A DNA stretch of 64,000 nt. Origin: Saccostrea cucullata. Lineage: Eukaryota. This document shows, one piece after another, positions 2,144 through 60,663 of this stretch. Under the pieces are notes generated by a model. That model worked only from the letters and a program-made list of their open reading frames with translations, had not been told where the DNA came from and did not search any database. Within the stretch, counting starts at the first letter, position 1. The number at the start of each line of letters is the position of its first letter. The stretch lies in NCBI RefSeq assembly GCF_032062105.1, contig NW_026921619.1, positions 1 through 64,000 on the forward strand, read 5' to 3'. Made by a program: the position numbers and the translations under genes.

Positions 2144-3337
2144 TTTCTACTCAAAGCTATACTTAAGTTTTAAAAATTTAAATAAATTATTGAAAACGGA
2201 GGAGCTTTATAGCTGCCTTATAGACATAATTTATATTCAAAATAAATATTAGATTTTATATAGTCAGTCTGTACCTGTATGCGTATTGAATGAATTTATT
2301 AGAGTCCTTGATCATGCTGACCAGTGAAACCTTGAGGGCTATAGGTCTTTTCTTTCATTTTATTTCATGTAAATTTGCTTGGTGTGGTATTTTTATTCCA
2401 TAACACCTTCCAAACGCTACCAGTTCGTCTTCTTTCATCTCTTTTTTTTATGATTTAAATTTATTAATTCCATTGAAAAAGCTATAAAAGTGTTATATTG
2501 CATGAAAGAAGACGAACTGGTTCTTTTAATCACTTTAAAGAAAGCATTTTTCTGGTTTAGGATTGAGAAGCTACTGCATTTACAGATTATTTAGAATGGA
2601 ATACAATGGGATTTATTCCCAAATCAGGGCCAGTGGGCATAAACATCTATAAGTATAATATACTTAACTTTTGTCAGTGTAGCTGAAAAACAAATTCCGG
2701 ATAAATATAACAGTTTAGTCTTTGAATTTTACGCTATTTGTCAGAGTCACCCATATGTTTCTTAGAGTACGACTTATACATCGGGAAAGAAAAAGATGTG
2801 GGTGACAATGGTGCCAAAATGAGGAATTGGAAGTATCACAAGTCATGATTTGATTTGGTCTCTTTCAATCAATTTCAAAAACATTCTTTGAAAAGTAGAG
2901 AAGTTTTTGTCTTTGTTTGAATCAAGTCCATTATGCTACAAACAGCTGAGCTCAAACTAAACTCCATGTAAGTAGAACAACTATCATTACTATGTGATCA
3001 GGTGATTCACGATCAACAGTGTTCAATAACAGGTCACAGGACTGAGGAGTCGGCAGTTTTATCAGTAAAATAGTGAAAACAATAACCTGTGAGCTACGCT
3101 AGCGTAAACAAAGTCACATTATTTTTTACATTGTTTTTCTGATGAAATTGCCGGTCCACTCCAATGTCTTTTTTTATATTCATTTCTCTCCCCCACTTGG
3201 AATATTAGATTAACTTTCAAACTTTTAATCCGTATTTGTTTACTTTTTCACTTACGGGTCAGTCAAAAAAATATAATTTAATTTCCTTCTTATCATGCTT
3301 ATGCCATGTCTAATTTACATATGCAGTGATAAATGTA

Positions 3338-17099: not shown

Positions 17100-18260
17100 A
17101 GACCAGAGGTCACTTTATATTGTACATCTTTAGGGCGACCATACGTTACTTTATAATGTAAAACAAAAGGGAGACCAGATGCCATCTTCCGTTCTACATC
17201 ATATGGGGGACCAGATGCCACCTTATATTGTACATCAGTAGGAAGACCAGAGGTCACCTTATATTGTACATCAGTTGGGGGACCAGAGGTCACCTTATAT
17301 TGTGCATCAGTTGGGGGACCAGGGGTCACCTTATATTGTAAATCAGTAGGGAGACCAGGGGTCACCTTATATTGTACATGTACATTAGTAGGGGGACCAG
17401 AGGACACCTTATATTATACATCAGTAGGGGGCCAAAGGACACCTTATATTGTGCATCAGTTGGGGGACCAGGGGTCACCTTATATTGTACATCAGTAGGG
17501 AGACCAGGGGTCACCTTATTGTACATGTACATTAGTAGGGGGACCAGAGGACACCTTATATTATACATCAGTAGGGGGCCAAAGGACACCTTATATTGTA
17601 CATCAGTTTGGGGACCAAGGGTCACCTTATATTGTACATCAGTAGGGAGACCAGAGGTCACCTTATATTGTTCATCAGTAGGGAGACCAGGGGTCAGCTT
17701 ATATTGTATATCAGTGGGGGGGGGGGGGCAGTGGACACCTTATATTGTACATCAGTAGGGGTCACCTTATATTGTAAATCAGCAGGGGGACCAGAGGACA
17801 TCTTATATTGTACATCAGTAGGGGGACCAGAGGTCACCCTATATTGTACATCAGTTGGGGGACCAGAGGTCACCTTATATTGTACATCAGTAGGGGGGCA
17901 GAGCCTTCAGATCAGTTTTAACGTTCGTCACTAGGTGGACCAGAGGTAAACTAATATTGTACATCAATAGGTCGACCAAAGTCACCTCATATTTTATTTC
18001 ATTATGGAGACTAAAGGTCACCTTTATAATGTTCAACAGAATGGGGACCAGAGGTCACCTTATACTGTACAAGACCAGACGTCAGATTATATTGTACATC
18101 ATAAGGGGAAACAGAAGACACCTTATACATCAAAGGGGGGGGGTCAGAGGTCACCCTATGTTGTAGATCATTATGGGGACCTTAGGTCACTTTATATTTT
18201 ACAAAACAAGGGGGACCAGATGTATATTGTACATACATAGGGAGACCAGTGGTCCCCATT
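17100..18260 (+). repeat. 36-bp minisatellite (gggggaccagaggtcaccttatattgtacatcagta)n
   Basis: Direct inspection; it generates the 12-aa periodic ORFs in the track. Confidence 0.9.
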
Positions 18261-19563: not shown

Positions 19564-22478
19564 ATGTCTTCTGGTCTCCCTGTTGACTTACAATATAAGA
19601 TGACCTCTGGTCTTCTTATTGATATAAAATATAAAGTGTCTTACGGTTTCTTCATTGTCGTTCAGAATAGTGTGATCATTAGTTTTAAAGATGTACAATA
19701 TATGGTGACCTCTTGTCCCCCTACTGATGTACAATACGAGGGCTGTTCAATAAATAATGTCCTGAACTCTATGACATACAATACAGATATCATATGGCAT
19801 TAAACTTAATTTTATTGAATATTTAATGAATTTATAACAATTTATGTGTTCACTTTTCATCACATAGTTTCATTGTGAGAAGCTGGAAAACAAGGGTATT
19901 CGAGACACTGCATAAAAATTGAATGGTAAAGAATTAGTAAACTAGAGTGAAATTAAGCCGTTCATTAAAGCTGCTGTAAAACTTGTCAAGAATTCCAAAG
20001 AAATACTCACTGAAATATGTAAAATTTACAGCAATCAATGTCTGTTTTATAGACACTTGAACAGTTGGATTTCAATGATAAAAAATTATATAATGTCCAT
20101 CAAAAATGGATACCGTCCTTGCAAACAAAAAATTAAACAACTAATGTATTGTTTGCCAAATTTCAACAAATAATCACTGATGGTGTATGATTGACTATAC
20201 GACACATAGCAAATTTGATAGACATCATTTCGGGAGTAGTTCACATTGTTTTAAAGAAACGTTTGACAGTAAAAAAAAAAAAGCTTAGTACTCAAAAGTC
20301 ACCCTATGTTTTAAAAAATGAGTGAAAACGACTGCGTGTAAGAATATCTATGAACAATTATTAAAAAAATATCAGTAGTTGTAGTTATCCACGTTTGTTT
20401 GAATTTCAAACAGATAATGAAACTTGAATCTATTGCTTAAAACCCTCAAAGCAAAATTTACAATAAGATGTACTTGACAAAAACAGAAAAAGTATGAGAA
20501 GAGCAAAGAATTGCAAGAGTACAAAGACAGATTTATACGCAGTTTTCGTAAATATTAGTGGTCTTGTTGTTCAAATTTGTTTTCGGGGAGGCAGTTTAAT
20601 TTCTGGAGGAATCTAGACGGCAAATTTTTTGCAAAAAATCAAAAGGTTAATGTGAATCAGGAATCCACTACATTAGATTTTTTCATGACAGCGTCCAAAC
20701 CCGTACGCCCTGAAGAGTAATGGAGTCTTGGGGATAAACAGAAAGTTAATGTTATTTCACATTATTAATATTCGCCAGATCTTTCGCCTTTTGACTTGTT
20801 TCCAAGTTTTCAAACTTGAAAAAAACACCTTCCAGAAGGAAGAAACAAGTCCAGGAAATTATAGGATCTGCCATAATCCCTTATACGAAGGGTCATACCC
20901 AAAAATGAGTTCTAAAAACAATCAGAAATTGGATAAAAAATGTTACGGACATGTGTTTAATTAAAAGATAATATTAGGTTAAATCATTATGACTAAATTA
21001 TTGAAAAGTGTCTTTTGTTTCTTTCCGAGCACCGACGACATTATTCATTGAACATCCCTCGTATAAGGTGACCTCTAGTCCCCCTACTGTTGCACAATAT
21101 AAGGTGACCTTTAGTCCTCCTACTGTTGTACAATGTAAGGTGACCTCTAGTCACCCTACTGTTGTACAATATAAGGTGATTTCTAGTCCCCCTTCTGATG
21201 TACAATATAAGTTGACCTCTAGTTCCCCTAGTGATGTAATATAAGGTGACCTCTAGTCCCCTACTGTTGTACAATATAAAGTGAACTCTAGTCCCCCAAC
21301 TGTTGCACAATATAAGGTGACCTCTATTCCCCCTACTGTTGTACAATATAAGGTGAACTCTGGTCTTCTTATTGATGTTCAATATAAGGTGTCCTCTGGT
21401 CTCCTAATTGATGTTCAATATGTGTCCTCTGGTCCCCCTACTGATGTACAATATAAGGTGACCTCTGGTCCCCCTTTTGATGTACAATATAAGATAACCT
21501 CTGTTTCCCCTACTGATGTACAATATAAGGTGTCCTCTAGTCCCCCTACTGTTGTACAATATACGGTGTCCGCTGGTCTCCCTACTGATGTACAATATAA
21601 GATGATCTGTAGTCTCCTAATTGATTTGCAATATAAGGTGTCCTCTTGTCCGCCTACTGATATACAATATAAGGTGACCTCTGGTTCCCCTACTGATGTA
21701 CATTATAAGCTGACCTCTAGTGCCCCTACTGATGTACTGTGTACAATATAAAGTGAACTCTGGTCCCCCTACTGATGTACAATATAAGATGTCCTCTGGT
21801 CCCCCTAATGATGTACAATATAAGATAACCTCATGTCCCGCTACTGATGTACAATATATGATAACCCCTGGTTCCCCTACTGATATGTACAATATAAGGT
21901 GTCCTCTGGTCCCCCTACTGATGTACAATATAAGGTGACCCCTGGTCTCCCTACTGATATACAATATAAGATGACCTCTGGTCTCCTTATTGATTTTCAA
22001 TATAAGGTGTCCTCTGGTCCCCCTACTGATGTACAATATAAGGTGACCTCTGGTCCCCTTACTAATGTACATTATAAGCTGACCTCTAATGCCCCTACTG
22101 ATGTACTGTACAATATAAGGTGACCTCTGATCCCCCTACTGATGTACAATATAAGGTGACCCCTAGTCTCCCTACTGATGTACAATATAAGGTGACCTCT
22201 AGTCCACCTAATCCTGTACAATATAAGGTGACCTCTGGTCTCCTTATTGATGTTCAATATAAGGTGACCTCTGGTCCCCCAAATGATGTACAATATAAGG
22301 TATCCTCAGTTCCCCCGTATTATGTGCAATAAAAAGTTACCTTTGGCCCCCTATTAATTTAAAATGTAAGGTGACCTATGATCCCTCTAATGATGTACAA
22401 TATAACAATTGGGTAGGGTGACAACTGGTCTCCCTACTGATGTATAGTATAATATAAGGTTACCTCTGGTCCCCCTAA
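19564..22478 (-). repeat. Same 36-bp minisatellite in inverted orientation (interrupted by a mariner; runs into the assembly gap)
   Basis: (tactgatgtacaatataaggtgacctctggtccccc)n. Confidence 0.9.
19737..21061 (+). mobile_element. Full-length-sized (1325 bp) decayed mariner transposon; transposase pseudogene
   Basis: TIRs cgagggctgttcaataaataatgtc / gacattattcattgaacatccctcg; TA duplication inside a minisatellite unit; YSPDLSPFD motif remnant (tattcgccagatctttcgccttttgac ~20769); many stops and frameshifts. Confidence 0.85.
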
Positions 22479-22978: not shown

Positions 22979-24646
22979 ATGAAATATATATATATGCATA
23001 AAAGAGGATCTATCTCGACAGAGCTACGACACTACCTTTTACCGACAGAAATTTCTTCCGGTAAACTACAGGCCAATCCAAAAGTACACAAGAAAAATCA
23101 CCCGCTGAGAACTATAGTAAATGGCCGTCAACATCCCACAGAAAAACTAGCAGAGTATGTTGAATTACAGCTCGAGGATGCAAACAAATCACTTAAAAGT
23201 TACATACAGGACACCACGGATTTCTTGAGGAAACTCTCAACATTGAATCAACCGTTGCCGAATTCTTCTTTATTATTTTGCATGGATGTTAAATCACTGT
23301 ATCCTAGTATACCAAGGAAGGAAGCAAGGGAAGTAATTAAAAGGATTCTAGAAGAACGACAGAAAAAAGAAGTAGATACTGACAGTATTCTAGAAATGAT
23401 GGATGCTGTCCTGGATAACAATAATTTTAGTTTCAACAATAAACATTATATCCAAACCGAAGGTACTGCTATAGGATCTAAACTGGGACGTAACTATGCA
23501 TGTGTATACATGGGGGAATGGGAAAATATTCTTTTGGCGATTTGTAAACAACAACCTCTTTTTTATCTAAGATACATTGACGATATTTTTGGGATCTGGA
23601 CGGGGACAGAAGAAGAACTACATGATTTCCATATGACTGCAAATAATATTCACCCCAACATTCAGCTTGACCTGCGTTTTTCAAAAACAAAAATAGACTT
23701 CCTTGATGTTTCTATTTCTCTGGATAACGGATTTCTCACAACAGATCTTTACAGCAAACCAACTGACAAACATATGTACCTTAACAAAACCTCCAGCCAT
23801 CCCGAATCTACAAAAAGTTCAATTCCGTACGGCCTTGGTCTTAGAGCACGTCGTATTTGCTCCACAGAGGAAAACTATCAAAGCCAACGTGATAAAGTGA
23901 AAAAGAACTTGCGAAAACGAGGATATTCTAGCAACGAAGTAGAAAAACAACTTACGAAAGTTGACAAACTCAATCGCTCGGATCTACTAAATTATAGAAA
24001 AAATAAAACGCGATGTGACCGTGTTCCCCTTGTGTTGACCTATTCAAAAGGATTACCGAATATTCATAACATTTTGAAGAAAAGACAAAAAATTCTTGAA
24101 AATTCCGATCGCCTGAAACTCGCGTTCAAAAAGACCCCAATCGTTGCCTATAAAAGAGACAAAAATTTGAAAGACATTTTAGTGTATAAAAAACACAACA
24201 ATTTATTTTTTAAAAAAGGAAATTTATGTGAGCCATGTGGTGCTAAAAAATGTATTTTGTGTAAATTTGTTGTGAAAACCAGCCAGTTTGAAGATAATAA
24301 CGGATGCACTTTTCAAGTCAAAAATTATATTAATTGTAAATCAAGGAATGTTGTTTATGGAATTTTTTGTAAAAAGTGTGACAAAATAGTGTATGTGGGA
24401 GAAACTGGTGATAGTTTATATCAAAGACATGTGTTGAATTTGTCTTTAATTAGAAGAGAAACAAATGATCCTGTGGCTACTCATTTTAATTCAGATGTAC
24501 ATACAGTAGAAGATTATAATATAATAGGCATTGAAAAACTGTATAAGAATGACATTTACCGCAAATATAGAGAAAATCTTTGGAAGAAAAAGTTGAACAC
24601 TTATATACCATTTGGTATTAACAAAAGGGAACACTTCTGTCTTTGA
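22979..24646 (+). pseudogene. 5'-truncated PLE ORF (RT + GIY-YIG only; lacks N-terminus, OTU and DKG)
   Basis: Matches the full ORF from MHKRGS onward; the leading MKYIY comes from flanking (TA)n. Confidence 0.85.
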
Positions 24647-24818: not shown

Positions 24819-24910
24819 TTTGGCGCAATTTTAGTGCATGACGTTGCCTCTCAATTTCTATGTTCATTGTGACGTCATAATACTGTTGAGTTGCTATGCA
24901 TTTAAATAAA
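24819..24910 (+). promoter_or_regulatory. Candidate pLTR promoter/poly(A) motifs (repeated in every unit)
   Basis: E2F-like TTTGGCGC (24819-24826), CRE palindrome TGACGTCA (24870-24877), TTTAAATAAA containing AATAAA (24905-24910) just 5' of the ribozyme; motif matches only. Confidence 0.35.
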
Positions 24911-24960
24911 CACGACTGATGAAGGCCGGTGACACGGCTGAAATATTTCGAAAAGTGTTT
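24908..24960 (+). ncRNA. Minimal type-I hammerhead ribozyme (unit 1)
   Basis: Core CTGATGA (24916-24922) ... GAAA (24940-24943); stem II GGCCG/CGGCT with loop GTGACA; stem I CGA/TCG plus AAACA/TGTTT; palindromic stem III region GAAATATTTC. Confidence 0.75.
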
Positions 24961-25023: not shown

Positions 25024-28000
25024 ATGACCAGCGTGCAAAAGAACGAATTGAGAATTTTGCGTAAAACATTTTTGAAGAAAACCAGATATGAGAGCCACCA
25101 ATTATTCTTACAATCTTGCTTGGAACGTAACATTATTCCAAAAGGATTTAAACTTAAATGGACTTTAGGTTTGGATGCAACAATTGACAACAAAGAAAAT
25201 ATTCATGGAATCCTGGACTCAACTTCCCGAAAATTAATGCAGGAATCCGTAAAGGTTTGTGTTAAAACTGTTTCAAAACTTAAAGAATCTATAGAAAAGC
25301 AGAGTGAAAGTCTAAGGACGAAACTTGGCGAGGAGGAGTATATAGAGGCTTTTTCATCTATCAATGCCAATGTAGAAAAAAACGCAGAGAAACTTTTCAG
25401 AACAAAGAGTAGGAAACTAGGTGCATTAAATGAAAACAGGAATAAAAAAGATAATGTTGTATCTACTTTGACCGTAAACCCCACAGTTGACAATGCAATC
25501 ATAGTTGATGAAGATGTAGAAATTCGAATAGAGGGGGATGGGAACTGTTTCTATAGATGCGTCTCATATTATTTATTTGATGATCAGAAATTTCATACTG
25601 AAATAAGAAGAAAGGTTGTAGAAGAACTGAATGCAAATAAACAATTTTATAGTGAGTACGTAGACGGAGATTTTCAAGATCATTTGAACAATGTCAAACT
25701 ATTGGACGGAAGTGTGGCTTCATGGGCAACAGAAGCAGAAGTGTTTGCAGCAGCATACCGATTTGATGTTGATATTTTTGTGAAATCAAATTCAAATAAC
25801 CGATCCCAATGGCAAAAGTACCCGAATGCGGAGGAATGCGATCATAAAAAAGATTTCATTTGTTTAAATTACTTCTCAAATCATTTTAATTTCATCAAAA
25901 CCTCACATCGCCCGTGCAATTGCTTTGTATCTAATTCTGAAGCAACAGATGATCTATTATCGGAAGATTCTAAAATGCACAACGTGGATTCGGAGGAAAA
26001 GGATGAGAACAATGAAACTATGGTAATGCCTGATAATAGTACATGTTCAGATAAGGATGTGATCAATATGTCTTCAAAAAAACTAACAAACGCGCAGTTA
26101 AGCTTACTTAAAAAAGGACTAAAATTTGTACCTACTAAAAAGAATATTGATTTCACACAGTTATTAACAGACCTGCAAACATGGGAACGTAGAATGCGAC
26201 TGCGGGAATTCTTTTTTAATGAGGAAGATGACGAATCTTCAGATACAGATGAACAGTATGAGAAAAAGAAATCAAATTCAAAGTGGACACCAGAAGAGGG
26301 GAGGGACAAATGGCTTGATGAATACATTAGACAAGTTAAGGAAGATGTAATCAGGGGATTAAGTAGAAATTTTTCGAGCAATATTACAAACTCAGAGGAA
26401 AGTGCTATGAGAGAGCTTCTAGAGGATCCAAATATTATCATTAGACCAGCAGACAAAGGATCAGGAGTCGTTGTTATGGATACAGATAAATACGTTGATC
26501 AAGTGGAAAACGAAATGCTGAATAGCTCATCCTACAGTGAAGTAAAAGAAGACAGATCTCAACAAATAACTAACAAAATACAAAAGTTAGTGAATAACAT
26601 GCATAAAAGAGGATCTATCTCGACAGAGCTACGACACTACCTTTTACCGACAGAAATTTCTTCCGGTAAACTACAGGCCAATCCAAAAGTACACAAGAAA
26701 AATCACCCGCTGAGAACTATAGTAAATGGCCGTCAACATCCCACAGAAAAACTAGCAGAGTATGTTGAATTACAGCTCGAGGATGCAAACAAATCACTTA
26801 AAAGTTACATACAGGACACCACGGATTTCTTGAGGAAACTCTCAACATTGAATCAACCGTTGCCGAATTCTTCTTTATTATTTTGCATGGATGTTAAATC
26901 ACTGTATCCTAGTATACCAAGGAAGGAAGCAAGGGAAGTAATTAAAAGGATTCTAGAAGAACGACAGAAAAAAGAAGTAGATACTGACAGTATTCTAGAA
27001 ATGATGGATGCTGTCCTGGATAACAATAATTTTAGTTTCAACAATAAACATTATATCCAAACCGAAGGTACTGCTATAGGATCTAAACTGGGACGAAACT
27101 ATGCATGTGTATACATGGGGGAATGGGAAAATATTCTTTTGGCGATTTGTAAACAACAACCTCTTTTTTATCTAAGATACATTGACGATATTTTTGGGAT
27201 CTGGACGGGGACAGAAGAAGAACTACATGATTTCCATATGACTGCAAATAATATTCACCCCAACATTCAGCTTGACCTGCGTTTTTCAAAAACAAAAATA
27301 GACTTCCTTGATGTTTCTATTTCTCTGGATAACGGATTTCTCACAACAGATCTTTACAGCAAACCAACTGACAAACATATGTACCTTAACAAAACCTCCA
27401 GCCATCCCGAATCTACAAAAAGTTCAATTCCGTACGGCCTTGGTCTTAGAGCACGTCGTATTTGCTCCACAGAGGAAAACTATCAAAGCCAACGTGATAA
27501 AGTGAAAAAGAACTTGCGAAAACGAGGATATTCTAGCAACGAAGTAGAAAAACAACTTACGAAAGTTGACAAACTCAATCGCTCGGATCTACTAAATTAT
27601 AGAAAAAATAAAACGCGATGTGACCGTGTTCCCCTTGTGTTGACCTATTCAAAAGGATTACCGAATATTCATAACATTTTGAAGAAAAGACAAAAAATTC
27701 TTGAAAATTCCGATCGCCTGAAACTCGCGTTCAAAAAGACCCCAATCGTTGCCTATAAAAGAGACAAAAATTTGAAAGACATTTTAGTGTATAAAAAACA
27801 CAACAATTTATTTTTTAAAAAAGGAAATTTATGTGAGCCATGTGGTGCTAAAAAATGTATTTTGTGTAAATTTGTTGTGAAAACCAGCCAGTTTGAAGAT
27901 AATAACGGATGCACTTTTCAAGTCAAAAATTATATTAATTGTAAATCAAGGAATGTTGTTTATGGAATTTTTTGTAAAAAGTGTGACAAAATAGTGTATG

Positions 28001-28251
28001 TGGGAGAAACTGGTGATAGTTTATATCAAAGACATGTGTTGAATTTGTCTTTAATTAGAAGAGAAACAAATGATCCTGTGGCTACTCATTTTAATTCAGA
28101 TGTACATACAGTAGAAGATTATAATATAATAGGCATTGAAAAACTGTATAAGAATGACATTTACCGCAAATATAGAGAAAATCTTTGGAAGAAAAAGTTG
28201 AACACTTATATACCATTTGGTATTAACAAAAGGGAACACTTCTGTCTTTGA
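25024..28251 (+). CDS. PLE polyprotein: N-terminal PLE motif, OTU protease, DKG, RT, Cys-rich linker, GIY-YIG endonuclease (1075 aa)
   Basis: HQLFLQSC...IIPKG; GDGNCFYR...WATEAE...NHFN; IRPADKGSGVVVMD; DVKSLYPSI, GTAIGS, RYIDD; CEPC...CILC; VVYGIFCKKC...YVGETG...R...E...GIN. Confidence 0.95.
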   Translation: MTSVQKNELRILRKTFLKKTRYESHQLFLQSCLERNIIPKGFKLKWTLGLDATIDNKENIHGILDSTSRKLMQESVKVCVKTVSKLKESIEKQSESLRTKLGEEEYIEAFSSINANVEKNAEKLFRTKSRKLGALNENRNKKDNVVSTLTVNPTVDNAIIVDEDVEIRIEGDGNCFYRCVSYYLFDDQKFHTEIRRKVVEELNANKQFYSEYVDGDFQDHLNNVKLLDGSVASWATEAEVFAAAYRFDVDIFVKSNSNNRSQWQKYPNAEECDHKKDFICLNYFSNHFNFIKTSHRPCNCFVSNSEATDDLLSEDSKMHNVDSEEKDENNETMVMPDNSTCSDKDVINMSSKKLTNAQLSLLKKGLKFVPTKKNIDFTQLLTDLQTWERRMRLREFFFNEEDDESSDTDEQYEKKKSNSKWTPEEGRDKWLDEYIRQVKEDVIRGLSRNFSSNITNSEESAMRELLEDPNIIIRPADKGSGVVVMDTDKYVDQVENEMLNSSSYSEVKEDRSQQITNKIQKLVNNMHKRGSISTELRHYLLPTEISSGKLQANPKVHKKNHPLRTIVNGRQHPTEKLAEYVELQLEDANKSLKSYIQDTTDFLRKLSTLNQPLPNSSLLFCMDVKSLYPSIPRKEAREVIKRILEERQKKEVDTDSILEMMDAVLDNNNFSFNNKHYIQTEGTAIGSKLGRNYACVYMGEWENILLAICKQQPLFYLRYIDDIFGIWTGTEEELHDFHMTANNIHPNIQLDLRFSKTKIDFLDVSISLDNGFLTTDLYSKPTDKHMYLNKTSSHPESTKSSIPYGLGLRARRICSTEENYQSQRDKVKKNLRKRGYSSNEVEKQLTKVDKLNRSDLLNYRKNKTRCDRVPLVLTYSKGLPNIHNILKKRQKILENSDRLKLAFKKTPIVAYKRDKNLKDILVYKKHNNLFFKKGNLCEPCGAKKCILCKFVVKTSQFEDNNGCTFQVKNYINCKSRNVVYGIFCKKCDKIVYVGETGDSLYQRHVLNLSLIRRETNDPVATHFNSDVHTVEDYNIIGIEKLYKNDIYRKYRENLWKKKLNTYIPFGINKREHFCL

Positions 28252-28512
28252 ATTGGATTTATGAACATTTGTGTGACATTGTATACTTATTTTTACAGAT
28301 ATACTTTTATATATACTTTAAAATCATCTTTTTAATATACCCCGTATTCTAGTATTTTATTCTGTATGATAAAAATTTTGATACACAAGTACAATTTTTG
28401 CTCTCACAATATTTTCAGATGTTTTTGGCGCAATTTTAGTGCATGACGTTGCCTCTCAATTTCTATGTTCATTCTGACGTCATAATACTGTTGAGTTGCT
28501 ATGCATTTAAAT

Positions 28513-28565
28513 AAACACGACTGATGAAGGCCGGTGACACGGCTGAAATATTTCGAAAAGTGTTT
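28513..28565 (+). ncRNA. Minimal hammerhead ribozyme (unit 2)
   Basis: Same sequence as 24908-24960; CTGATGA at 28521. Confidence 0.75.
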
Positions 28566-28628
28566 TAAAGTTTTTTATTGTATTGACAAAAAGAGACTTT
28601 GGATTTGTATAAAGTGTAGCAGAACAAC

Positions 28629-49886: not shown

Positions 49887-50030
49887 NNNNNNNNNNNNNN
49901 NNNNNNNNNNNNNNNNNNNNNNNNNNNNNNNNNNNNNNNNNNNNNNNNNNNNNNNNNNNNNNNNNNNNNNNNNNNNNNNNNNNNNNNNNNNNNNNNNNNN
50001 NNNNNNNNNNNNNNNNNNNNNNNNNNNNNN
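49887..50030. other. Assembly gap
   Basis: Run of N. Confidence 1.
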
Positions 50031-50536
50031 TTCTATATATTTATTACTAATAAAAAGTCCATCAAAAGAAATGTTTATTATATCGGTCTAACAATTTCAC
50101 TATTGACCGGTCTTACATAAGAATTGTTAGACCGCAACGTCACTCCTCTGTTACGTCACAATTAATCGTTCAATATTGGCGACGCGGAAATGAGCTACAA
50201 GAGTTGTTGCAAACAGCAAAGTAAGGAAGAAGGGAAGAGTATGTCTTGTGATAAATAATTTTTGTGATACAATAGCTATATAATTGATTTTGTTTTTTCT
50301 CAGCTTGATGTTTTATATTTACTGAAGAAGCCATAATTTTCCATATAAAATAATTAATAATATAGCGTGTATTGATTAAATCGATCAATCTTATGTGAGC
50401 AGTGAAGGGTATAACAAAACAGTTATTGACTGGGTATGAGGGCAACATATGATTTGGCCTGCGGCCTCGGGCAACATTTTCACCTTCAGGTCCAACAAAT
50501 CATATGTTGCCCTCATACCCAGTCAATAACTGTATA
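50031..50536. mobile_element. End of a hairpin-terminated non-autonomous element (Crypton-like) inserted in the Gypsy 5' LTR
   Basis: Perfect 38-bp inverted repeat 50419-50456 / 50496-50533 ending ...aactgtataa exactly where LTR homology begins; other end lost in the gap. Confidence 0.55.
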
Positions 50537-51480: not shown

Positions 51481-52785
51481 GTGGAAAATGTTAGATCCGC
51501 GCACTTACTTGACGAAGATTCTGCATACGACACGCTTGTTTCATCGTTTTCTCCGTCATTGTCGATGGAACGTGGATATAAATCAGATAATTCTGATTCC
51601 AAAATAAACACTGATACTGATTGTCCCCGAAATTCATCGTATTTCTCACCTAATCAATCAGAAAACAGATGTTTTTCGCCGATGTATAGACAAAATACAG
51701 ACGAATCCATAGATCACGTGACGTCGTACACAAAGAGTATGGAAAGCCATTCCGATGCTAACTTTACGCGGTCGAAAGCTAGCACACCGCGTGATTCTTA
51801 CGCAAATAAATATGGCATAGACAAACTGAATGTTTGTAAAACACCTCAGGGTAATTTTAAGAAAGAACAAAGTCTTTATGATAATTATGGAAACCGGTCT
51901 GAATCTAAAAGCAATCGTTTTAGAAAATACAAAGAACCGGACGTGTACAATGCAGAGAATACAGAATGGCCCGATTATCTATGTCATTTCGAGCAAGTTG
52001 CAATGTGGAACGAGTGGACAGATGCCGAGAAAGCTACTCAGTTAGCTATGAGTTTGAGAGGTCGAGCGCAAAGAGTTCTGAGTGAGCTCTCGTATAGGGA
52101 ACTAGGAAATTATGCCGAGTTGAAATGCGCGCTAACTCAGCGATTTTCTCCACCTGAGCGTGAAACGGCATACAGGTGCGAGTTTCGTAATAGAAAACGG
52201 AAATCAGGTGAAACTGTGTCCGAGTATGGATACTCGTTAAGGCGACTAGCTAGTCGCGCTTTCCCAACATTTCCTTCAGATATGCATGAAAGTCTTACTG
52301 TTGAACAGTTTGTCACTGGTTTAGGTTGCCACGAACTAAAACGCTACGTGCAGTTTTCTCATCCTAAAACGCTAGATCGCGCTATTCCTCTGGCGCTCGA
52401 ATTTGAGTCGTTTGAAGGGTCTCAGGACACCCCACGGAAACCGCGGGACATTGAAAAACCACATGTTGGTTATGCACGCGCTGTTCTTCCGCCCACAGAT
52501 AAAAATGACAACAATAGTCATGTAAATCTAGAGAAACTAGAGGAATCTATTCAACACATGATTCAGAAAACACTGAAGTCTTTGGAATTTAAAGGGCACA
52601 ATGGTCCTTACGAGAAAAGACCTAATGGTCATAGTGGGCCTCGAGAAATAGTTTGTTACGCTTGTAATGAAACTGGCCATATAAGTTCAAAATGTCCAAA
52701 GAAAAACTCAAAGCCGAAAAATAGAAAGGGAACCCATAATGACTCTAGTCATTTAAACGAAAATGGGCTGAGCCCACGGCCGTAA
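51481..52785 (+). CDS. gag: Gag (capsid + CCHC zinc knuckle); true N-terminus cut off by the MITE
   Basis: CYACNETGHISSKC knuckle; retrotransposon gag-like W..YL..FE...N.W...K...L...L.G.A region; frame is open upstream to the MITE. Confidence 0.9.
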   Translation: MENVRSAHLLDEDSAYDTLVSSFSPSLSMERGYKSDNSDSKINTDTDCPRNSSYFSPNQSENRCFSPMYRQNTDESIDHVTSYTKSMESHSDANFTRSKASTPRDSYANKYGIDKLNVCKTPQGNFKKEQSLYDNYGNRSESKSNRFRKYKEPDVYNAENTEWPDYLCHFEQVAMWNEWTDAEKATQLAMSLRGRAQRVLSELSYRELGNYAELKCALTQRFSPPERETAYRCEFRNRKRKSGETVSEYGYSLRRLASRAFPTFPSDMHESLTVEQFVTGLGCHELKRYVQFSHPKTLDRAIPLALEFESFEGSQDTPRKPRDIEKPHVGYARAVLPPTDKNDNNSHVNLEKLEESIQHMIQKTLKSLEFKGHNGPYEKRPNGHSGPREIVCYACNETGHISSKCPKKNSKPKNRKGTHNDSSHLNENGLSPRP

Positions 52786-55700
52786 GCCCAGCCCCTGAAA
52801 AACCCAGTCATGAAAATAGGCCAAAACAAGACACGAAAGCTCGTTTGTACAGTATTTCAAAAAGTTGTTGGTTTGTCAAAGCAAATCTTTGTAATAGAGA
52901 AATTTATTTTCTTGTTGATACGGGGTCCAGCTGGAGCCTAATATCAAATGAAATTTTTGATTCTTTGCTTGGAAACAAAGACCTAGTTGATCTTCACACT
53001 TCATTGACTACGGCCGATGGGGATTTGCTCTCAGTGAAGGGTAAAACCGATGTAGACTTATGGATTAATGGGAAGGAATTTTTGACAACTGTTGTTGTTG
53101 CTCAACTTGGAGATTTGTCCGGTATACTCGGACTTGATTTTCTTTCAAAATATGAGGCTATAATGGACATGAACCTAGGACGACTACATTCACCATTCTT
53201 TGGTGAGATCGGTTTAGTAAAAGAGGACAAATTACAAAGTACATGCGCACGCATTCATGTGACAGAGACGATTAGCATACCAGCTAAATGCGAGATGTTT
53301 TTGAAAGGAAGCACGGACTGTGGATTTCCACATGGTGTGGAAGGTTTGATAGAACCGCTTTCCGATGATAGACGAATTTTGTTACCGAAATCTGTCGTTA
53401 ATGTACAAAATAACAAAGTGCTTTTCTCTGTACTAAATCCAACAACAGAAACAGTGATACTTAAGAAAAATGCTACCGTGGCGTCCGTACAAACAATTGA
53501 ATCTGTAACTGAATTTGACATCAAAAAAGTCACAGAAAGCCCTCCAGTGGAGACAAGCTTACCAAGCTTACCCGACTATTTGCAGTCCCTGGTCGACAAC
53601 AGCTCGAGTAGCTTAACTGAACAGCAACGCCAGCTGTTAAGCGACACATTAGCACGTAATGCTGACGTTTTTATGGGACCAAATACCCCATTAGGGCGTA
53701 CAGATCTTGTGAAACACACAATAAATACTGACAGAGCTAAGCCAATCAAGTTACCACCAAGGCGTCTCCCTATGCACCAAAAAGCCGTAGCAGATCAAGA
53801 AATAGACAAAATGCTTGAAGCTGATATAATAGAACCAAGCAGTTCACCTTGGGCTGCGCCAATAGTTCTAGTGAAGAAACGGGATGGAACTACACGATTC
53901 TGTGTAGATTATCGAAAGCTAAATAACGTAACGATTAAGGATGCCTATCCCCTGCCACGAATCAATGAATCACTAGACACACTCTCCGGCGCTAAATTCT
54001 TCTGTACTCTCGATCTTGCTAGTGGCTATTGGCAAGTCGCTATGGACGAATCTGATAAAACAAAGACAGCGTTCGCAACCCACAGGGGTCTATTCCAGTT
54101 TAAAGTGTTACCGTTTGGTTTATCTAATAGCCCTGCAACATTTGAGCGCTTGATGGAAGCCGTTCTATCTGGCCTACAATGGGAGAAATGTCTAGTTTAT
54201 CTAGACGACATCATAACATTTGGTGCCACGTTCGAAGAAACTCTAGAGAACCTGACTGTCATCTTTGACAGACTTCGTACTGCGAATCTTAAACTAAAAC
54301 CGAAGAAATGCGCCTTGTTTCAAGAACAAGTAGAATTTCTGGGTCATACTGTATCCCAAGAAGGTATTAGATGTAACCCCGACAAGATATCAGCTGTGAG
54401 GAATTGGCCCGTACCAACTTCCGTTTCAGAAGTACGCAGCTTTATAGGACTCGCATCCTATTATCGCAGGTTTATAAACAATTTTTCGAATGTCGCATAC
54501 CCGCTAACCCGCTTGACACAAAAGAACAGAAAGTTTGAATGGTCAGAGGAATGTGAAAATGCTTTTGATACCTTAAAGCATCTCCTTACAACTGCACCAG
54601 TATTATCGTACCCATCACCAACAGACGAATTTATATTGGATACTGATGCTAGCGCATATGGAGTCGGAGCTGTGCTCTCACAGATGCAAAATGGCGAGGA
54701 AGTAGTAATTGCTTATGGTAGCAAGACACTATCCAGATCCCAAATGGGATATTGCACTACATATCGAGAGCTACTAGCAGTCGTAACCTTTGTCAAACAA
54801 TTCCGACACTATCTATATGGAAGACCCTTTCTATTAAGAACAGACCATTCTTCGTTGATCTGGTTGAAAAATTTTAAGGAGCCAGAAGGTCTACTTGCAC
54901 GCTGGATAATTCTGTTGGAAACCTATGACTTCAAAATTGAACACAGAAAAGGAAGTCTTCATGGCAATGCAGATGGCTTGTCTAGGAAACCAAGGAAACG
55001 TTGCAAAAGAGAAGGATGCAACCAATGCTCCTCCGGAGAATGCTCAGTCAATGCTTTAAGCTCAGTAGCTACTCAAGATTCAGACATTACCAAGACTAAC
55101 AGACCCGAATCCAATTGGGTAGAACAATGGAGTCTCCAGTACTTACAAGAACAACAGGACAAAGACATGGCAATATCAAAGGTTAAACAACTTATCATTA
55201 ATCGGAGAGAACGTCCGAAATTAAATGACCCGTTGCCAACAGTAAACACATTACTTCGCCAGTGGCAGCGACTCAAAGTGGAAAACGATATACTCTACAG
55301 AGTATGCGAAGAAAATGAAAACGAAAGTCATCTCCAGTTAGTTGCCCCAAAGTCTATTAGGAGAGAAATTATGCAACATTTGCATAACAGTAAGACGTCG
55401 GGACATCTTGGACGCGAGAGAACTCTGCATTCTATCAGAAATCGTTTTTATTGGCCAGGAATGACTGACGATGTTGCACGCTGGTGTCAAACTTGTCAAC
55501 CTTGTTCAAAGAAAAAGCCAGGTCCTGGACAAGGGAAGTCCCCAATGCAACACCATGAAGTATTTGGTCCTATGGAATGTCTTGCCATCGACATCTTAGG
55601 TCCCCTACCATTAACTAGAGAAGGAAAACAATACATTATGGTTGTTGGAGATTATTTTTCCAAATGGAAAGAGGCATTTGCATTGGAGGATCATACAGCA

Positions 55701-56630
55701 CAGACGGTTGCTGATAAGCTTGTAACAGAAGTAATATGCCGCTTAGGCATACCATTTAGAATCCATACCGACCAAGGTCGTGAATTCGAATCGGCACTGT
55801 TTGCTGAGTTGTGTTCTCTCTTGGAGATAATAAAATCCCGAACCACGCCATATCACCCTCAATCCGACGGTATGGTAGAGAGATTCAACCGCACACTCCA
55901 GCAAATGTTGTCTATCTTTGTCAATGAGAACAGATCTAATTGGGATGACCACTTGCCATATTTAATGATGGCCTACCGTGCCACGGTTCACGAGAGTACA
56001 AAATGTACTCCCAATCTGGTCATGTTAGGGAGAGAAATCAATCTACCCATAGATGTTATAGCTGGTACAACTCCTACAAATACACCAGAGATTGGCTGCT
56101 ATCATTCTTACGTAGAGTGGATTCGCAATACCATGGAAATGACATATGGAATTGTTCATGAAAACTTGCAATCAAGTTTTAAGAAACAGAAACGATACCA
56201 TGATGTTAGACTGAAGCCACGGGAGTTTGCAATAGACGATCTGGTATGGAGATGGTACCCACCAAAAGCAAACCAGAAATTAGGATCCGGTTGGACAGGA
56301 CCCTACAGGGTTGTTCGGAAATTCTCAGACATAACCTATGAGATAAAACATGAAACAACAGGAAAAACAGTTGTTGTCCATGTTGATCATCTGAAGCAAC
56401 TTCACGGTAACGGAATTGCAGAGAATCAATATGATTCTGACAATGACCAAGACGAATCTTGCCTATACGATGAAAATTCAGATTCCGAATATGATACTAT
56501 GAGTGATCGGGAGGAAATTGAGCCTTTGGCTTGCAAATCGCCAGATCTGGATGCGGTTCAATCGAGACGCGCTGATGCTTTCTCGCGGAAAGGAAGGCTC
56601 ATAAAACCCGTTTCTCGATATTCTCCTTAG
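52749..56630 (+). CDS. pol: Pol: aspartic protease, RT, RNase H, integrase (expressed as Gag-Pol by frameshift)
   Basis: LVDTGSS; RFCVDYRKLN, LPFGL, YLDDII; LDTDAS; H...GHLG...CQTC, DILGP, TDQGREF, ERFNRTL; WTGPY. Confidence 0.95.
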   Translation, partial: SFKRKWAEPTAVSPAPEKPSHENRPKQDTKARLYSISKSCWFVKANLCNREIYFLVDTGSSWSLISNEIFDSLLGNKDLVDLHTSLTTADGDLLSVKGKTDVDLWINGKEFLTTVVVAQLGDLSGILGLDFLSKYEAIMDMNLGRLHSPFFGEIGLVKEDKLQSTCARIHVTETISIPAKCEMFLKGSTDCGFPHGVEGLIEPLSDDRRILLPKSVVNVQNNKVLFSVLNPTTETVILKKNATVASVQTIESVTEFDIKKVTESPPVETSLPSLPDYLQSLVDNSSSSLTEQQRQLLSDTLARNADVFMGPNTPLGRTDLVKHTINTDRAKPIKLPPRRLPMHQKAVADQEIDKMLEADIIEPSSSPWAAPIVLVKKRDGTTRFCVDYRKLNNVTIKDAYPLPRINESLDTLSGAKFFCTLDLASGYWQVAMDESDKTKTAFATHRGLFQFKVLPFGLSNSPATFERLMEAVLSGLQWEKCLVYLDDIITFGATFEETLENLTVIFDRLRTANLKLKPKKCALFQEQVEFLGHTVSQEGIRCNPDKISAVRNWPVPTSVSEVRSFIGLASYYRRFINNFSNVAYPLTRLTQKNRKFEWSEECENAFDTLKHLLTTAPVLSYPSPTDEFILDTDASAYGVGAVLSQMQNGEEVVIAYGSKTLSRSQMGYCTTYRELLAVVTFVKQFRHYLYGRPFLLRTDHSSLIWLKNFKEPEGLLARWIILLETYDFKIEHRKGSLHGNADGLSRKPRKRCKREGCNQCSSGECSVNALSSVATQDSDITKTNRPESNWVEQWSLQYLQEQQDKDMAISKVKQLIINRRERPKLNDPLPTVNTLLRQWQRLKVENDILYRVCEENENESHLQLVAPKSIRREIMQHLHNSKTSGHLGRERTLHSIRNRFYWPGMTDDVARWCQTCQPCSKKKPGPGQGKSPMQHHEVFGPMECLAIDILGPLPLTREGKQYIMVVGDYFSKWKEAFALEDHTAQTVADKLVTEVICRLGIPFRIHTDQGREFESALFAELCSLLEIIKSRTTPYHPQSDGMVERFNRTLQQMLSIFVNENRSNWDDHLPYLMMAYRATVHESTKCTPNLVMLGREINLPIDVIAGTTPTNTPEIGCYHSYVEWIRNTMEMTYGIVHENLQSSFKKQKRYHDVRLKPREFAIDDLVWRWYPPKANQKLGSGWTGPYRVVRKFSDITYEIKHETTGKTVVVHVDHLKQLHGNGIAENQYDSDNDQDESCLYDENSDSEYDTMSDREEIEPLACKSPDLDAVQSRRADAFSRKGRLIKPVSRYSP
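52752..52794 (+). promoter_or_regulatory. -1 programmed ribosomal frameshift signal (second copy 60630-60672)
   Basis: T TTA AAC in gag phase, 6-nt spacer, GC-rich stem GGGCTG...CAGCCC; the -1 frame is open from 52749 into pol. Confidence 0.8.
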
Positions 56631-57060
56631 AAAAATAAATAAGATAAATATATTTCTTGGGGGTGGTGTTTATGTTATTTGTTTGTTTTAATGAAGTTTA
56701 ATCCTATGGAAGACCCAATTTTATGTCTGTTGAGGACATGATGACATGTAGTACACGGTATAAATTCCTAAGGTTGGAATTGGGTAGATTTGTTTTGTAT
56801 ACACCATGGGTTTAGCTTTCGGTGTCTTATCTACCAGGTGTTATTTCCCACGAGAGAATAGTGATTCTCTGAGTGATGGGATGTGTACTTGTTGTGTCGG
56901 AGAAATGACACTTGTCATTGTTGTATAATTGGGTGGGGATAAGTTATACAGTTTATTTATTTTCCTTTCCAACTCTTTGCTGTTATAATGCAAGGTTTAT
57001 TAGTAAAAAGAAAATCTTCATACAGTTCTTTAATGTTGAACAAAATTGATTCTATTTCAG

Positions 57061-57948
57061 GCTACAGATTTTCTAGAGTTATTTGCGGATCTGAGTGAAG
57101 TCAATGCTGTCCTTGGACAGTGCCAGACCGACTATATTGAAGTCCTCTACGATCCTTCAGGAATGATCTGCCCCGTGCTAGGATGCAGAGGGACGAAGTT
57201 TCCTTCCAAATCAAAATTCTCCCGACACTGGGAGGAGAGACACAAACTGTATGTCACCAAATTTATATGTTCCGTTAATGGGTGTAGCGCGGAGTGTAGG
57301 CGGAAATCAGACATGAGAACTCACATTCGTCGAGCACATGAGAGCAATCCAGACCGAGTGGAGTTTATACTCACTAAGTGTGAGATGATTCACAGGGAGA
57401 ACAAGGGTTATTTAGACCCAGGTCTTTACATATTTAAAGGAGGATGCCTGAGAGAAACTACTGACCCAGTTGTAACCCAGGAACAGGAGAAGTCCACTAC
57501 GGATGATGGAATAACGCCGGTGGATGTGGAGAGTAGATGTTCTACTCAGACTGAGCCAACTGCACCAACAACCGACCTCAAGGAAGAAGAGCTGGAGACC
57601 AGCAGCAAGAAGAGAAAGCTTACTCTCCAGGAGTACAGGGACAGGGAGGTCCTAGATCACCGGTCGACAGGGACCCAAACAACGTGGGTGAACCTACCCA
57701 GCCTTGACCTACCAAACCTCCCAGAGGCAGGTAATTCAGAGGAATTGCAGTCGTGCCTCATGTGGCTGTGCAACAGCATGGACGTAGTAGGAAGAGCGAG
57801 AGCACTGGTGAAAAAGAGGATAGAGCACGGTGAGCGAACGGAACTGGAGCGAGAGAGGGAAATGAGGCGTCAACTGGAGAAGAAGAACCGGGAATTAGAG
57901 AGTGAGATCAGAAAATTACGATCTATGGACAAACTTTTCGAGGAGTAA
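57061..57948 (+). CDS. ORF3: two C2H2-type zinc fingers, basic NLS-like motif, C-terminal coiled coil; probably a spliced exon
   Basis: CPVLGC-x13-H-x4-H and CSVNGC-x12-H-x4-H; SKKRKL; E/R/K/L-rich C-terminus; no ATG at the ORF start but acceptor-like ttctatttcag|G at 57060/57061; first ATG at 57163. Confidence 0.75.
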   Translation, partial: ATDFLELFADLSEVNAVLGQCQTDYIEVLYDPSGMICPVLGCRGTKFPSKSKFSRHWEERHKLYVTKFICSVNGCSAECRRKSDMRTHIRRAHESNPDRVEFILTKCEMIHRENKGYLDPGLYIFKGGCLRETTDPVVTQEQEKSTTDDGITPVDVESRCSTQTEPTAPTTDLKEEELETSSKKRKLTLQEYRDREVLDHRSTGTQTTWVNLPSLDLPNLPEAGNSEELQSCLMWLCNSMDVVGRARALVKKRIEHGERTELEREREMRRQLEKKNRELESEIRKLRSMDKLFEE

Positions 57949-59358: not shown

Positions 59359-60663
59359 GTGGAAAATGTTAGATCCGCGCACTTACTTGACGAAGATTCT
59401 GCATACGACACGCTTGTTTCATCGTTTTCTCCGTCATTGTCGATGGAACGTGGATATAAATCAGATAATTCTGATTCCAAAATAAACACTGATACTGATT
59501 GTCCCCGAAATTCATCGTATTTCTCACCTAATCAATCAGAAAACAGATGTTTTTCGCCGATGTATAGACAAAATACAGACGAATCCATAGATCACGTGAC
59601 GTCGTACACAAAGAGTATGGAAAGCCATTCCGATGCTAACTTTACGCGGTCGAAAGCTAGCACACCGCGTGATTCTTACGCAAATAAATATGGCATAGAC
59701 AAACTGAATGTTTGTAAAACACCTCAGGGTAATTTTAAGAAAGAACAAAGTCTTTATGATAATTATGGAAACCGGTCTGAATCTAAAAGCAATCGTTTTA
59801 GAAAATACAAAGAACCGGACGTGTACAATGCAGAGAATACAGAATGGCCCGATTATCTATGTCATTTCGAGCAAGTTGCAATGTGGAACGAGTGGACAGA
59901 TGCCGAGAAAGCTACTCAGTTAGCTATGAGTTTGAGAGGTCGAGCGCAAAGAGTTCTGAGTGAGCTCTCGTATAGGGAACTAGGAAATTATGCCGAGTTG
60001 AAATGCGCGCTAACTCAGCGATTTTCTCCACCTGAGCGTGAAACGGCATACAGGTGCGAGTTTCGTAATAGAAAACGGAAATCAGGTGAAACTGTGTCCG
60101 AGTATGGATACTCGTTAAGGCGACTAGCTAGTCGCGCTTTCCCAACATTTCCTTCAGATATGCATGAAAGTCTTACTGTTGAACAGTTTGTCACTGGTTT
60201 AGGTTGCCACGAACTAAAACGCTACGTGCAGTTTTCTCATCCTAAAACGCTAGATCGCGCTATTCCTCTGGCGCTCGAATTTGAGTCGTTTGAAGGGTCT
60301 CAGGACACCCCACGGAAACCGCGGGACATTGAAAAACCACATGTTGGTTATGCACGCGCTGTTCTTCCGCCCACAGATAAAAATGACAACAATAGTCATG
60401 TAAATCTAGAGAAACTAGAGGAATCTATTCAACACATGATTCAGAAAACACTGAAGTCTTTGGAATTTAAAGGGCACAATGGTCCTTACGAGAAAAGACC
60501 TAATGGTCATAGTGGGCCTCGAGAAATAGTTTGTTACGCTTGTAATGAAACTGGCCATATAAGTTCAAAATGTCCAAAGAAAAACTCAAAGCCGAAAAAT
60601 AGAAAGGGAACCCATAATGACTCTAGTCATTTAAACGAAAATGGGCTGAGCCCACGGCCGTAA
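59359..60663 (+). CDS. gag: Gag, copy 2
   Basis: Same protein as 51481-52785. Confidence 0.9.
   Translation: MENVRSAHLLDEDSAYDTLVSSFSPSLSMERGYKSDNSDSKINTDTDCPRNSSYFSPNQSENRCFSPMYRQNTDESIDHVTSYTKSMESHSDANFTRSKASTPRDSYANKYGIDKLNVCKTPQGNFKKEQSLYDNYGNRSESKSNRFRKYKEPDVYNAENTEWPDYLCHFEQVAMWNEWTDAEKATQLAMSLRGRAQRVLSELSYRELGNYAELKCALTQRFSPPERETAYRCEFRNRKRKSGETVSEYGYSLRRLASRAFPTFPSDMHESLTVEQFVTGLGCHELKRYVQFSHPKTLDRAIPLALEFESFEGSQDTPRKPRDIEKPHVGYARAVLPPTDKNDNNSHVNLEKLEESIQHMIQKTLKSLEFKGHNGPYEKRPNGHSGPREIVCYACNETGHISSKCPKKNSKPKNRKGTHNDSSHLNENGLSPRP

Follow-up and report, generated by a model that had tools for sequence, protein, structure and literature searches.

A deubiquitinase-type OTU domain in the reverse transcriptase protein of a Penelope-like element from Saccostrea cucullata and in related elements

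Penelope-like elements (PLEs) have been described as the simplest retrotransposons, with one open reading frame (ORF) that encodes a reverse transcriptase (RT) and a GIY-YIG endonuclease (EN). A 64,000-nucleotide stretch of the Saccostrea cucullata genome (assembly GCF_032062105.1, contig NW_026921619.1, positions 1 to 64,000 of the forward strand; hereafter the window) holds a head-to-tail array of a PLE whose ORF contains more than these two domains, and the question that this locus raises is why such an element should carry a domain of the OTU family of deubiquitinases (DUBs). An initial annotation had proposed that the OTU was a captured module which might protect the element from ubiquitin-dependent disposal, edit ubiquitin on chromatin at the target or process the element's own polyprotein. 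We find that profile, fold, catalytic-residue and comparative evidence agree on an OTU-family domain present in the PLE polyprotein as an added module, that this domain is retained across a large clade of PLEs, and that a second class of DUB replaces it in one nested lineage. We consider it likely that this lineage-borne OTU of the OTUD1/3/5 type, which appears catalytically intact and sits in a young PLE, acts as an isopeptidase for ubiquitin (or a ubiquitin-like modifier) and travels as part of the protein used for retrotransposition.

The OTU domain and the ORF that carries it

The features of the reference copy of the element are as follows.

25024–28251, plus strand: intact PLE ORF of 1075 residues, the reference copy, from the ORF list
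25093–25158, plus strand: N-terminal PLE (N1) motif SHxxFLxxC...IPKGF, residues ~24–45, from sequence; the same motif follows the JAB domain of sister proteins (see below)
25522–25902, plus strand: OTU deubiquitinase-type domain, residues 167–293, from Pfam, family alignment, PDB profile, AlphaFold model and Foldseek
25537–25548, plus strand: Asp172-Gly-Asn-Cys175 motif, within the OTU domain
25882–25884, plus strand: codon of the putative catalytic His287, within the OTU domain
25903–26055, plus strand: RPCxC motif, then acidic low-complexity linker, residues 294–344, from sequence and alignment
26056–27837, plus strand: PLE N-terminal conserved region, RT and thumb, with GxKF (G365–F368), DKG (477–479), RT-A D623 and YIDD (D721/D722)
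27832–27867, plus strand: zinc-finger-like linker of the CX2-5CxxC type (C937, C940, C945, C948), with C940, C945 and C948 invariant
27946–28248, plus strand: C-terminal GIY-YIG endonuclease with CCHH; Y980, C984, C987, Y992, G994, R1003, H1022, H1028, E1052 and N1068 invariant

The segment first marked as an OTU domain, 25516–25899, corresponds to codons 165–292, with the Cys175 codon at 25546–25548, and its residues read as they had been given. The Pfam profile PF02338 matches residues 171–286 of the ORF at 40.4 bits (E 5.2e-10, profile positions 2–120 of 128), which is above its curated cut-off of 23.3 bits and well outside what chance would give, and scores 28–31 bits on the relatives P0001–P0003. 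When the window domain was aligned with the matching regions of 27 related proteins (27–49% identity), the resulting profile of 28 PLE OTU domains matched OTUD5 (2.3e-18), OTUD1 (7.7e-16) and OTUD3 (6.5e-14) in the PDB, with the catalytic Cys and His in register. An AlphaFold2 model of a 143-residue stretch (residues 158–300), built from the family alignment, has a mean predicted local distance difference test (pLDDT) score of 90.9 and a predicted template-modelling (pTM) score of 0.84. Its best Foldseek match is OTUD1 (4bop; template-modelling (TM) score 0.71/0.77, root-mean-square deviation 1.9 Å over 134 columns), and OTUD5, OTUD3 and the nairovirus vOTUs follow, with otubains and yeast Otu1 and Otu2 also among the matches; the probability is 1.00 for OTUD1, OTUD5, OTUD3, the viral OTUs and yeast Otu1/Otu2 alike. 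The Pfam and structural comparisons which the initial annotation had proposed both came out in its favour.

Residues D172, G173, N174, C175, R178, R195, D214, H220, G229, E237, A242 and H287 are invariant in the 28 domains. The catalytic residues had been named as D172, C175, H287 and N289, and the first three of these hold among the relatives, but N289 does not: the position two past the His is occupied by N, D, S, E, T or V. In many OTUs the third member of the triad is the residue at this position, and D172, being invariant, could act in its place. On profile and modelled structure, the domain is a genuine OTU fold with a predicted nucleophile and general base that are both intact. It is present with 100% protein identity in all seven window copies that reach the N-terminus (at 25456, 29061, 32666, 36271, 39876, 43481 and 47086), and the eighth copy, the first in the array, lacks it through 5' truncation at unit offset 1576. 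The intactness of the seven copies had been noted at the outset, as had the position of the domain between the N-terminal PLE motif and GxKF, with an acidic linker after it. Directly after the OTU, the RPCxC motif (25903–25920, residues 294–299) is kept only in the closest relatives, P0001, P0004, P0007, P0011, P0012, P0014 and P0213.

The host ORF is, by its motifs, a canonical C-terminal-endonuclease PLE. In an alignment of 28 RT-EN sequences, GxKF, DKG, RT-A D623 and YIDD show no or almost no variation, and the linker spacing C940-x4-C945-xx-C948 (CX4CxxC) is invariant. A Pfam scan of the full 1075-residue ORF reported the OTU alone, with no RVT_1 and no GIY-YIG, so the PLE assignment rests on these motifs, on the domains recorded for relatives (PF00078 (RVT_1), DUF8422 and HTH_animal, with PF01541 on relatives such as P0055) and on the published criteria for canonical C-terminal-EN PLEs and their CX2-5CxxC linker motif (Craig et al. 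2021, PMC8557442). A PDB profile search with the RT-EN alignment gave weak RT matches (E 0.002), and a search of the ESM Atlas returned generic PLE clusters, none carrying an OTU. The CX4CxxC linker, together with (TA)n targeting, points to either the Neptune or the Nematis type.

The element resembles canonical Neptune/Nematis-type PLEs (PMC8557442) in its single ORF with N-terminal motifs, GxKF, DKG, RT, CX2-5CxxC and GIY-YIG with CCHH, and in having tandem and inverted partial copies (pseudo-long terminal repeats), copies that are cut short at the 5' end, (TA)n targets and, close to its 3' end, a candidate hammerhead motif. It differs from them in adding a 130-residue OTU with linkers between N1 and GxKF, whereas the described ORFs comprise RT and EN only. 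Among accessory domains, Craig et al. (PMC8557442) record PHD and SAP, a zinc knuckle and a Josephin-like motif, all of them in Chlamys alone.

Spread and origin of deubiquitinase-type domains in PLEs

A search with the RT-EN region returned 166 relatives; of those at 44–58% identity, many have an OTU in their precomputed domain lists, and the family hidden Markov model re-detects the OTU in 31 of the matches. A maximum-likelihood tree built from the RT-EN region of 110 proteins contains a clade with 67 members (SH-aLRT 100, branch 0.42) that holds all 27 OTU-bearing proteins and all four that bear a JAB domain; the 43 outgroup PLEs, long-N-terminus members included, have neither. If only those in-clade proteins are counted which lack JAB and extend 200 residues or more upstream of the RT-EN core, then 27 of 30 carry the OTU. 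Most of the other OTU-less entries are gene calls on short contigs, cut at the N-terminus and uninformative either way. The named hosts of the OTU-bearing relatives are Pinctada imbricata, Dreissena polymorpha and Acipenser, the other relatives come from Logan, ENA and JGI contigs that are often ~3.4–4.3 kb long with a single ORF, and the order N1-OTU-RT-EN recurs across independent contigs and species. The description of the OTU as a captured module is thus right as far as an added module goes, but not in supposing capture by this very element, since the domain goes back to the base of a large PLE clade and has co-diverged with the RT.

In public annotations these ORFs are called 'OTU domain-containing', 'GIY-YIG domain-containing' or 'uncharacterized' protein, so that annotators are taking a transposon for host DUB genes. 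Two gene models combine OTU-PLE parts with a further domain, a cytidine deaminase in P0105 (Solemya velum) and a PYRIN domain in P0110 (Acipenser ruthenus), each of which could be a chimeric annotation or a host-gene fusion.

Nested among the OTU-bearing lineages is a subclade of 17 rows (support 100) that has no OTU, and four of its members carry a JAB/MPN domain (Pfam 41–67 bits). This domain matches AMSH-LP (PDB 2znr; AMSH-LP/STAMBP-like) at E 5.4e-43 with roughly half of the aligned residues identical, and its zinc motif HxHx7Sx2D is intact. The JAB domain lies at the extreme N-terminus, before the N1 motif, and the OTU lies after that motif. Since the sites differ, the OTU and the JAMM represent two independent gains, within a single PLE lineage, of ubiquitin isopeptidase types whose mechanisms are unrelated. 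To a transposon specialist this alternation of OTU and AMSH would be the most interesting point. The likeness to the JAMM of AMSH-LP/STAMBP belongs to the sister PLE lineage and is absent from the window, and a JAB-bearing PLE sought in the Saccostrea cucullata genome was not found there, the only match being a host AMSH-like exon. The JAMM-first lineage can be seen at L048:295–3951 (P0051) and in P0044, P0045, P0049 and P0086, all on ENA or Logan contigs.

Where the OTU came from can be approached through its wider relatives. When the PLE-OTU profile was run against 1.84 billion representative proteins, 13181 of them matched at E<=1e-3; the number falls to 3780 if E<=1e-10 is required and to 69 if E<=1e-30 is. 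The top 150 include at least 24 PLE fragments or full ORFs, and the long proteins among them are mostly Helitron/Helentron RepHel proteins (P0141, P0160, P0162, P0168 and P0229), of which P0141, P0160 and P0162, scoring 137–147 bits against that profile, are the closest non-PLE relatives. One case each comes from a hAT transposase (P0201) and from the pol of a long terminal repeat (LTR) retrotransposon (P0237), which also count among the nearest OTUs outside PLEs, and one from a different RT (P0213); the presence of a PLE-type OTU in these three suggests that the module may move between element classes. In P0237 the OTU lies in a Gypsy-like pol, between RNase H and integrase; P0213 is a non-PLE RT protein with the RPCxC tail seen after the window OTU.

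A tree of OTU domains has a 98-supported split between 22 Helitron/Helentron OTUs, 14 of them from this genome, and 48 PLE OTUs together with a few from other transposable elements. Monophyly of the PLE OTUs is not rejected (approximately unbiased (AU) test, p 0.34), and the OTU groupings loosely mirror the RT tree. The module belongs to a pool of transposon-associated OTUs; PLEs probably took it up a single time, and from them it has now and then moved into other elements. The Helentrons of this genome were considered as direct donors and are ruled out by their 25–40% identity and the 98-supported split. Four other OTU loci here, with frames of ~1000–1200 residues, were considered as further OTU-bearing PLEs and rejected, there being no PLE RT-EN adjacent to them. 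The Helentrons themselves are very abundant, with over 130 genome loci similar to L035:916–8811 (contig C10406), and their frames of 2100–2850 residues encode Herpes_teg_N/VTD and OTU DUB-type domains, Rep, a PIF1 helicase and an apurinic/apyrimidinic (AP) endonuclease.

Possible roles of the OTU and competing explanations

On the reading that we favour, the OTU lies inserted between the N1 motif and the RT, was gained once near the base of the large PLE clade, has been inherited vertically with the RT-EN from then on and would serve as an isopeptidase of the retrotransposition protein. It may be that the domain strips ubiquitin from the element's own protein, which would allow escape from proteasomal or other ubiquitin-dependent disposal. 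Alternatively, it may strip ubiquitin from host factors, such as those of DNA damage, chromatin or innate signalling, at the site of target-primed reverse transcription. OTUD1 and AMSH-LP are both K63-linkage-specific; given that the one is the best fold match and the other is the replacing type, K63 chains could be guessed at as the target, though with low confidence. More broadly, we can picture a hitherto unrecognised and widespread Neptune-type PLE clade, with members from bivalves, sturgeon and many aquatic metagenomes and transcriptomes, in which a DUB is integral to the RT-EN protein, the OTU being ancestral and an AMSH-like JAMM serving in one nested lineage, so that deubiquitination, possibly of K63 chains, would be a selected and replaceable step of retrotransposition; this wider proposal is tentative, and we regard it as a serious possibility rather than an expectation.

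When the window copy is compared with copies on other contigs that have diverged from it, the ratio of nonsynonymous to synonymous change (pN/pS) is 0.11–0.46 for the OTU core and 0.11–0.21 for RT-EN, with only 4–6 synonymous substitutions per comparison and comparisons that are non-independent. This dN/dS-type check had been proposed with the initial annotation, and the values, all below 1, are those of a domain under purifying selection. The small counts nevertheless weigh against the isopeptidase reading, as do several other observations. Raw reads from oligo-dT RNA-seq cover 26100–28628 only, the 3' 2.5 kb of the element, at low depth and in both orientations. Transcription of the OTU-coding 5' part is suggested by a single 591-nt contig over 25250–25816, with 96% identity, which comes from an RNA library possibly containing DNA. 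The residue two past the His is variable, which makes any assignment of the triad geometry provisional. Three proteins in the clade (P0026, P0030 and P0050) have complete N-termini and no OTU, so the domain is dispensable in some lineages. Finally, it is from sequence that we infer catalytic activity, ubiquitin as the substrate and a benefit or phenotype for the element.

There are also other ways in which the domain could be explained. It might act on a ubiquitin-like modifier (ISG15-like, NEDD8 or SUMO) or on a non-ubiquitin substrate, and for nairovirus OTUs, which count among the fold matches, the entry titles of 3pse and 3phx indicate removal of ISG15 as well, while herpesviral and some transposon DUBs also deneddylate (PMC9741609). 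However, it is cellular OTUDs specific for ubiquitin that the domain matches best, in sequence as in fold, and the AMSH-like domain that replaces the OTU comes from a family of ubiquitin K63 isopeptidases, which makes such a substrate unlikely in our view. The position of the OTU between two modules, with flexible acidic linkers, would also suit a cis-acting protease which, like tymovirus PRO or arterivirus PLP2, separates the N-terminal part of the polyprotein from RT-EN. Some viral OTU-like and papain-like proteases both process polyproteins and deubiquitinate, and subunit cleavage has been considered for Helentron OTUs by Thomas et al. (PMC4067079). Against this, Gly-Gly is absent from the reference ORF and from 8 of 22 full-length OTU-PLE proteins, there is no aligned GG column outside the folded domains, and the nearest solved structures are the cellular deubiquitinases OTUD1/3/5 rather than processing proteases. 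The JAMM of the nested lineage is, moreover, of the AMSH type and at a different site, and AMSH-type JAMM metallo-isopeptidases are not known to process polyproteins. With no shared Gly-Gly site and a JAMM isopeptidase as the replacing domain, self-processing, which had been one of the options raised at first, is disfavoured, and we think it improbable.

It could also be argued that the OTU is a passenger, captured once, now neutral or inactive and kept only because the family is young: the genome copies are 95–100% identical, which leaves little time for decay, and the three in-clade proteins without an OTU would fit such a view. Yet the Asp, Cys and His are invariant even though the OTU domains are 27–49% and the RT-EN regions 44–58% identical across at least three named host genera, pN/pS is below 1, and this PLE lineage has independently gained a second intact DUB, which speaks for selection on the activity, so there is little likelihood of a mere passenger. 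A fusion artefact, whether through insertion of a Helentron or other OTU element into a PLE, mis-assembly or a chimeric gene call, might be suspected in a genome rich in Helentrons whose 2100–2850-residue frames contain OTU, the more so as public databases hold gene models near elements of this kind that are plainly chimeric (the deaminase of P0105, the PYRIN of P0110). The ORF is, however, unbroken in the seven window copies and in those on contigs C1241 and C9580, independent contigs and several species repeat the N1-OTU-RT-EN order, the Helentron OTUs found here reach no more than 25–40% identity and lie on the opposite side of the 98-supported split, and the four other OTU loci (~1000-residue frames) have no adjacent PLE RT-EN. 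We consider an artefact hardly credible.

If the isopeptidase reading is set beside known systems, then several parallels emerge. OTU domains in Helitrons/Helentrons and Ginger1 are already documented, as is a Josephin-like motif in one algal Chlamys PLE. As in the RepHel proteins of Helitrons/Helentrons (PMC6431247, PMC4067079, PMC9741609), the OTU is fused to the main transposition protein with its catalytic residues kept, and there too the OTU can be joined by another DUB class (VTD) or give way to it; unlike the PLE, these are rolling-circle DNA transposons rather than retroelements, and the OTUs of this genome's elements form a separate group. Helentron-encoded VTD deubiquitinases are biochemically active and DUB classes interchange in Helitrons and herpesviruses; the authors of that work stress that transposon OTU domains have never been assayed (PMC9741609). 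In Ginger1 DNA transposons the cysteine-protease module fused to the transposition enzyme is either an OTU or an Ulp1 domain, and the two do not occur together (Bao, Kapitonov and Jurka 2010, PMC2836005), which parallels OTU-or-JAMM; this likeness is one of description rather than sequence, and in Ginger1 the host protein is a DDE transposase and the domain is C-terminal. The Josephin-like domains of Dualen non-LTR elements and of the PLE Chlamys-1_cBra (cited in PMC8557442) likewise place a DUB-superfamily motif in a retroelement ORF, with a proposed interference in protein degradation, but they belong to another DUB family, show weak homology only and lie in an extension at the C-terminus of an algal PLE whose EN is N-terminal. 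Human OTUD1, OTUD5 (DUBA) and OTUD3, which are the best profile and fold matches and share the Cys and His positions, differ in having only 16–25% identity and in their ubiquitin-interacting motif (UIM) and phospho-activation regulatory regions, which are absent from the PLE OTU. Full-text literature searches yielded no paper on an OTU or any DUB in canonical PLEs, Repbase and Dfam entries not being covered, so the doubt expressed in the initial annotation as to any earlier description still stands.

Taken as comparative evidence, a DUB conserved across the clade together with an unrelated DUB class in a nested lineage suggests that ubiquitin removal helps these PLEs. If this is true, then retroelements would join Helentrons and herpesviruses, until now the only cases in which a dependence on DUBs has been shown. 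The young, intact and compact family, with its 3.6 kb unit and a confidently modelled domain of 143 residues, would be convenient for a DUB assay.

The array, its insertion sites and the rest of the window

The array and its associated features are listed here.

22982–22993, no strand: (AT)6 microsatellite, likely target site, directly 5' of the array
22994–49872, plus strand: head-to-tail PLE array with a 3605 bp period, 7.4 units, from unit-versus-unit comparison
Starts at 28629, 32234, 35839, 39444 and 43049, plus strand: further 1075-residue ORFs, the same length as the reference
Start at 46654, plus strand: 978-residue version of the ORF, in the region of the last array copy
28513–28565, plus strand: minimal hammerhead-ribozyme-like motif (CUGAUGA, stem II, GAAA, palindromic AUAU), read by eye

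The array consists of the first, 5'-truncated copy, which begins at unit offset 1576, then six complete copies and a last one that has a 357 bp internal deletion (offsets 2912–3267) and stops at unit offset 3580; a gap of Ns begins at 49887, fifteen bases past the array end. The units show 0–6 base differences between one another. A DNA contig from a public run spans the unit junction (28628 to 25024), so the tandem layout is not merely a feature of the assembly. Copies 99.5% identical to these, with intact ORFs, occur elsewhere in the genome, from which the family can be taken to be young; contig C1241 has a head-to-head pair with partial copies, and contig C9580 a partial and a full copy. 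DNA depth along the element rises from 12 at the 5' end to 300–500 at the 3' end, a steep increase which reflects 5' truncation of copies.

Flanking (TA)n repeats were found at three loci: on both sides of the C9580 copy, on the 5' side of a copy on C23030 and at the left end of the window array. The hammerhead-like motif lies ~40 nt before the 3' end of the element and is present in each unit (e.g. 24908–24960), and it also occurs in the 3' untranslated regions of the elements L044 (3394–3471) and L047 (3382–3458), whose RT-EN protein is 52–57% identical. Across the three elements the CUGA(U/A)GA and GAAA cores are kept, changes in stems I and II compensate one another, and helix III consists of four palindromic nucleotides, which are AUAU in the window element and AGCU in L044 and L047. 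Rfam scans of 20000–52000 and of the inter-ORF spacer reported no hammerhead family, even at E 10. A palindromic helix III of 4 nt would suit dimeric folding of the motif.

The remaining features of the window are these.

17100–18220 and 21062–22405: two 36-bp satellite arrays in opposite orientation, upstream of the PLE array
50419–50533: near-perfect 115-nt hairpin just past the assembly gap
51481–57948: Gypsy-type LTR retrotransposon, GC-richer, with gag at 51481–52785 (Retrotrans_gag and zinc knuckle) and pol at 52845–56630 (protease, RT, RNase H and integrase)
57046–57948: third ORF of the Gypsy-type element, 300 residues, no Pfam match
59359–60663: second gag copy, beginning at 59359

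The hairpin gives sub-threshold matches to unrelated microRNA precursor models and is probably a transposon inverted repeat rather than a microRNA.

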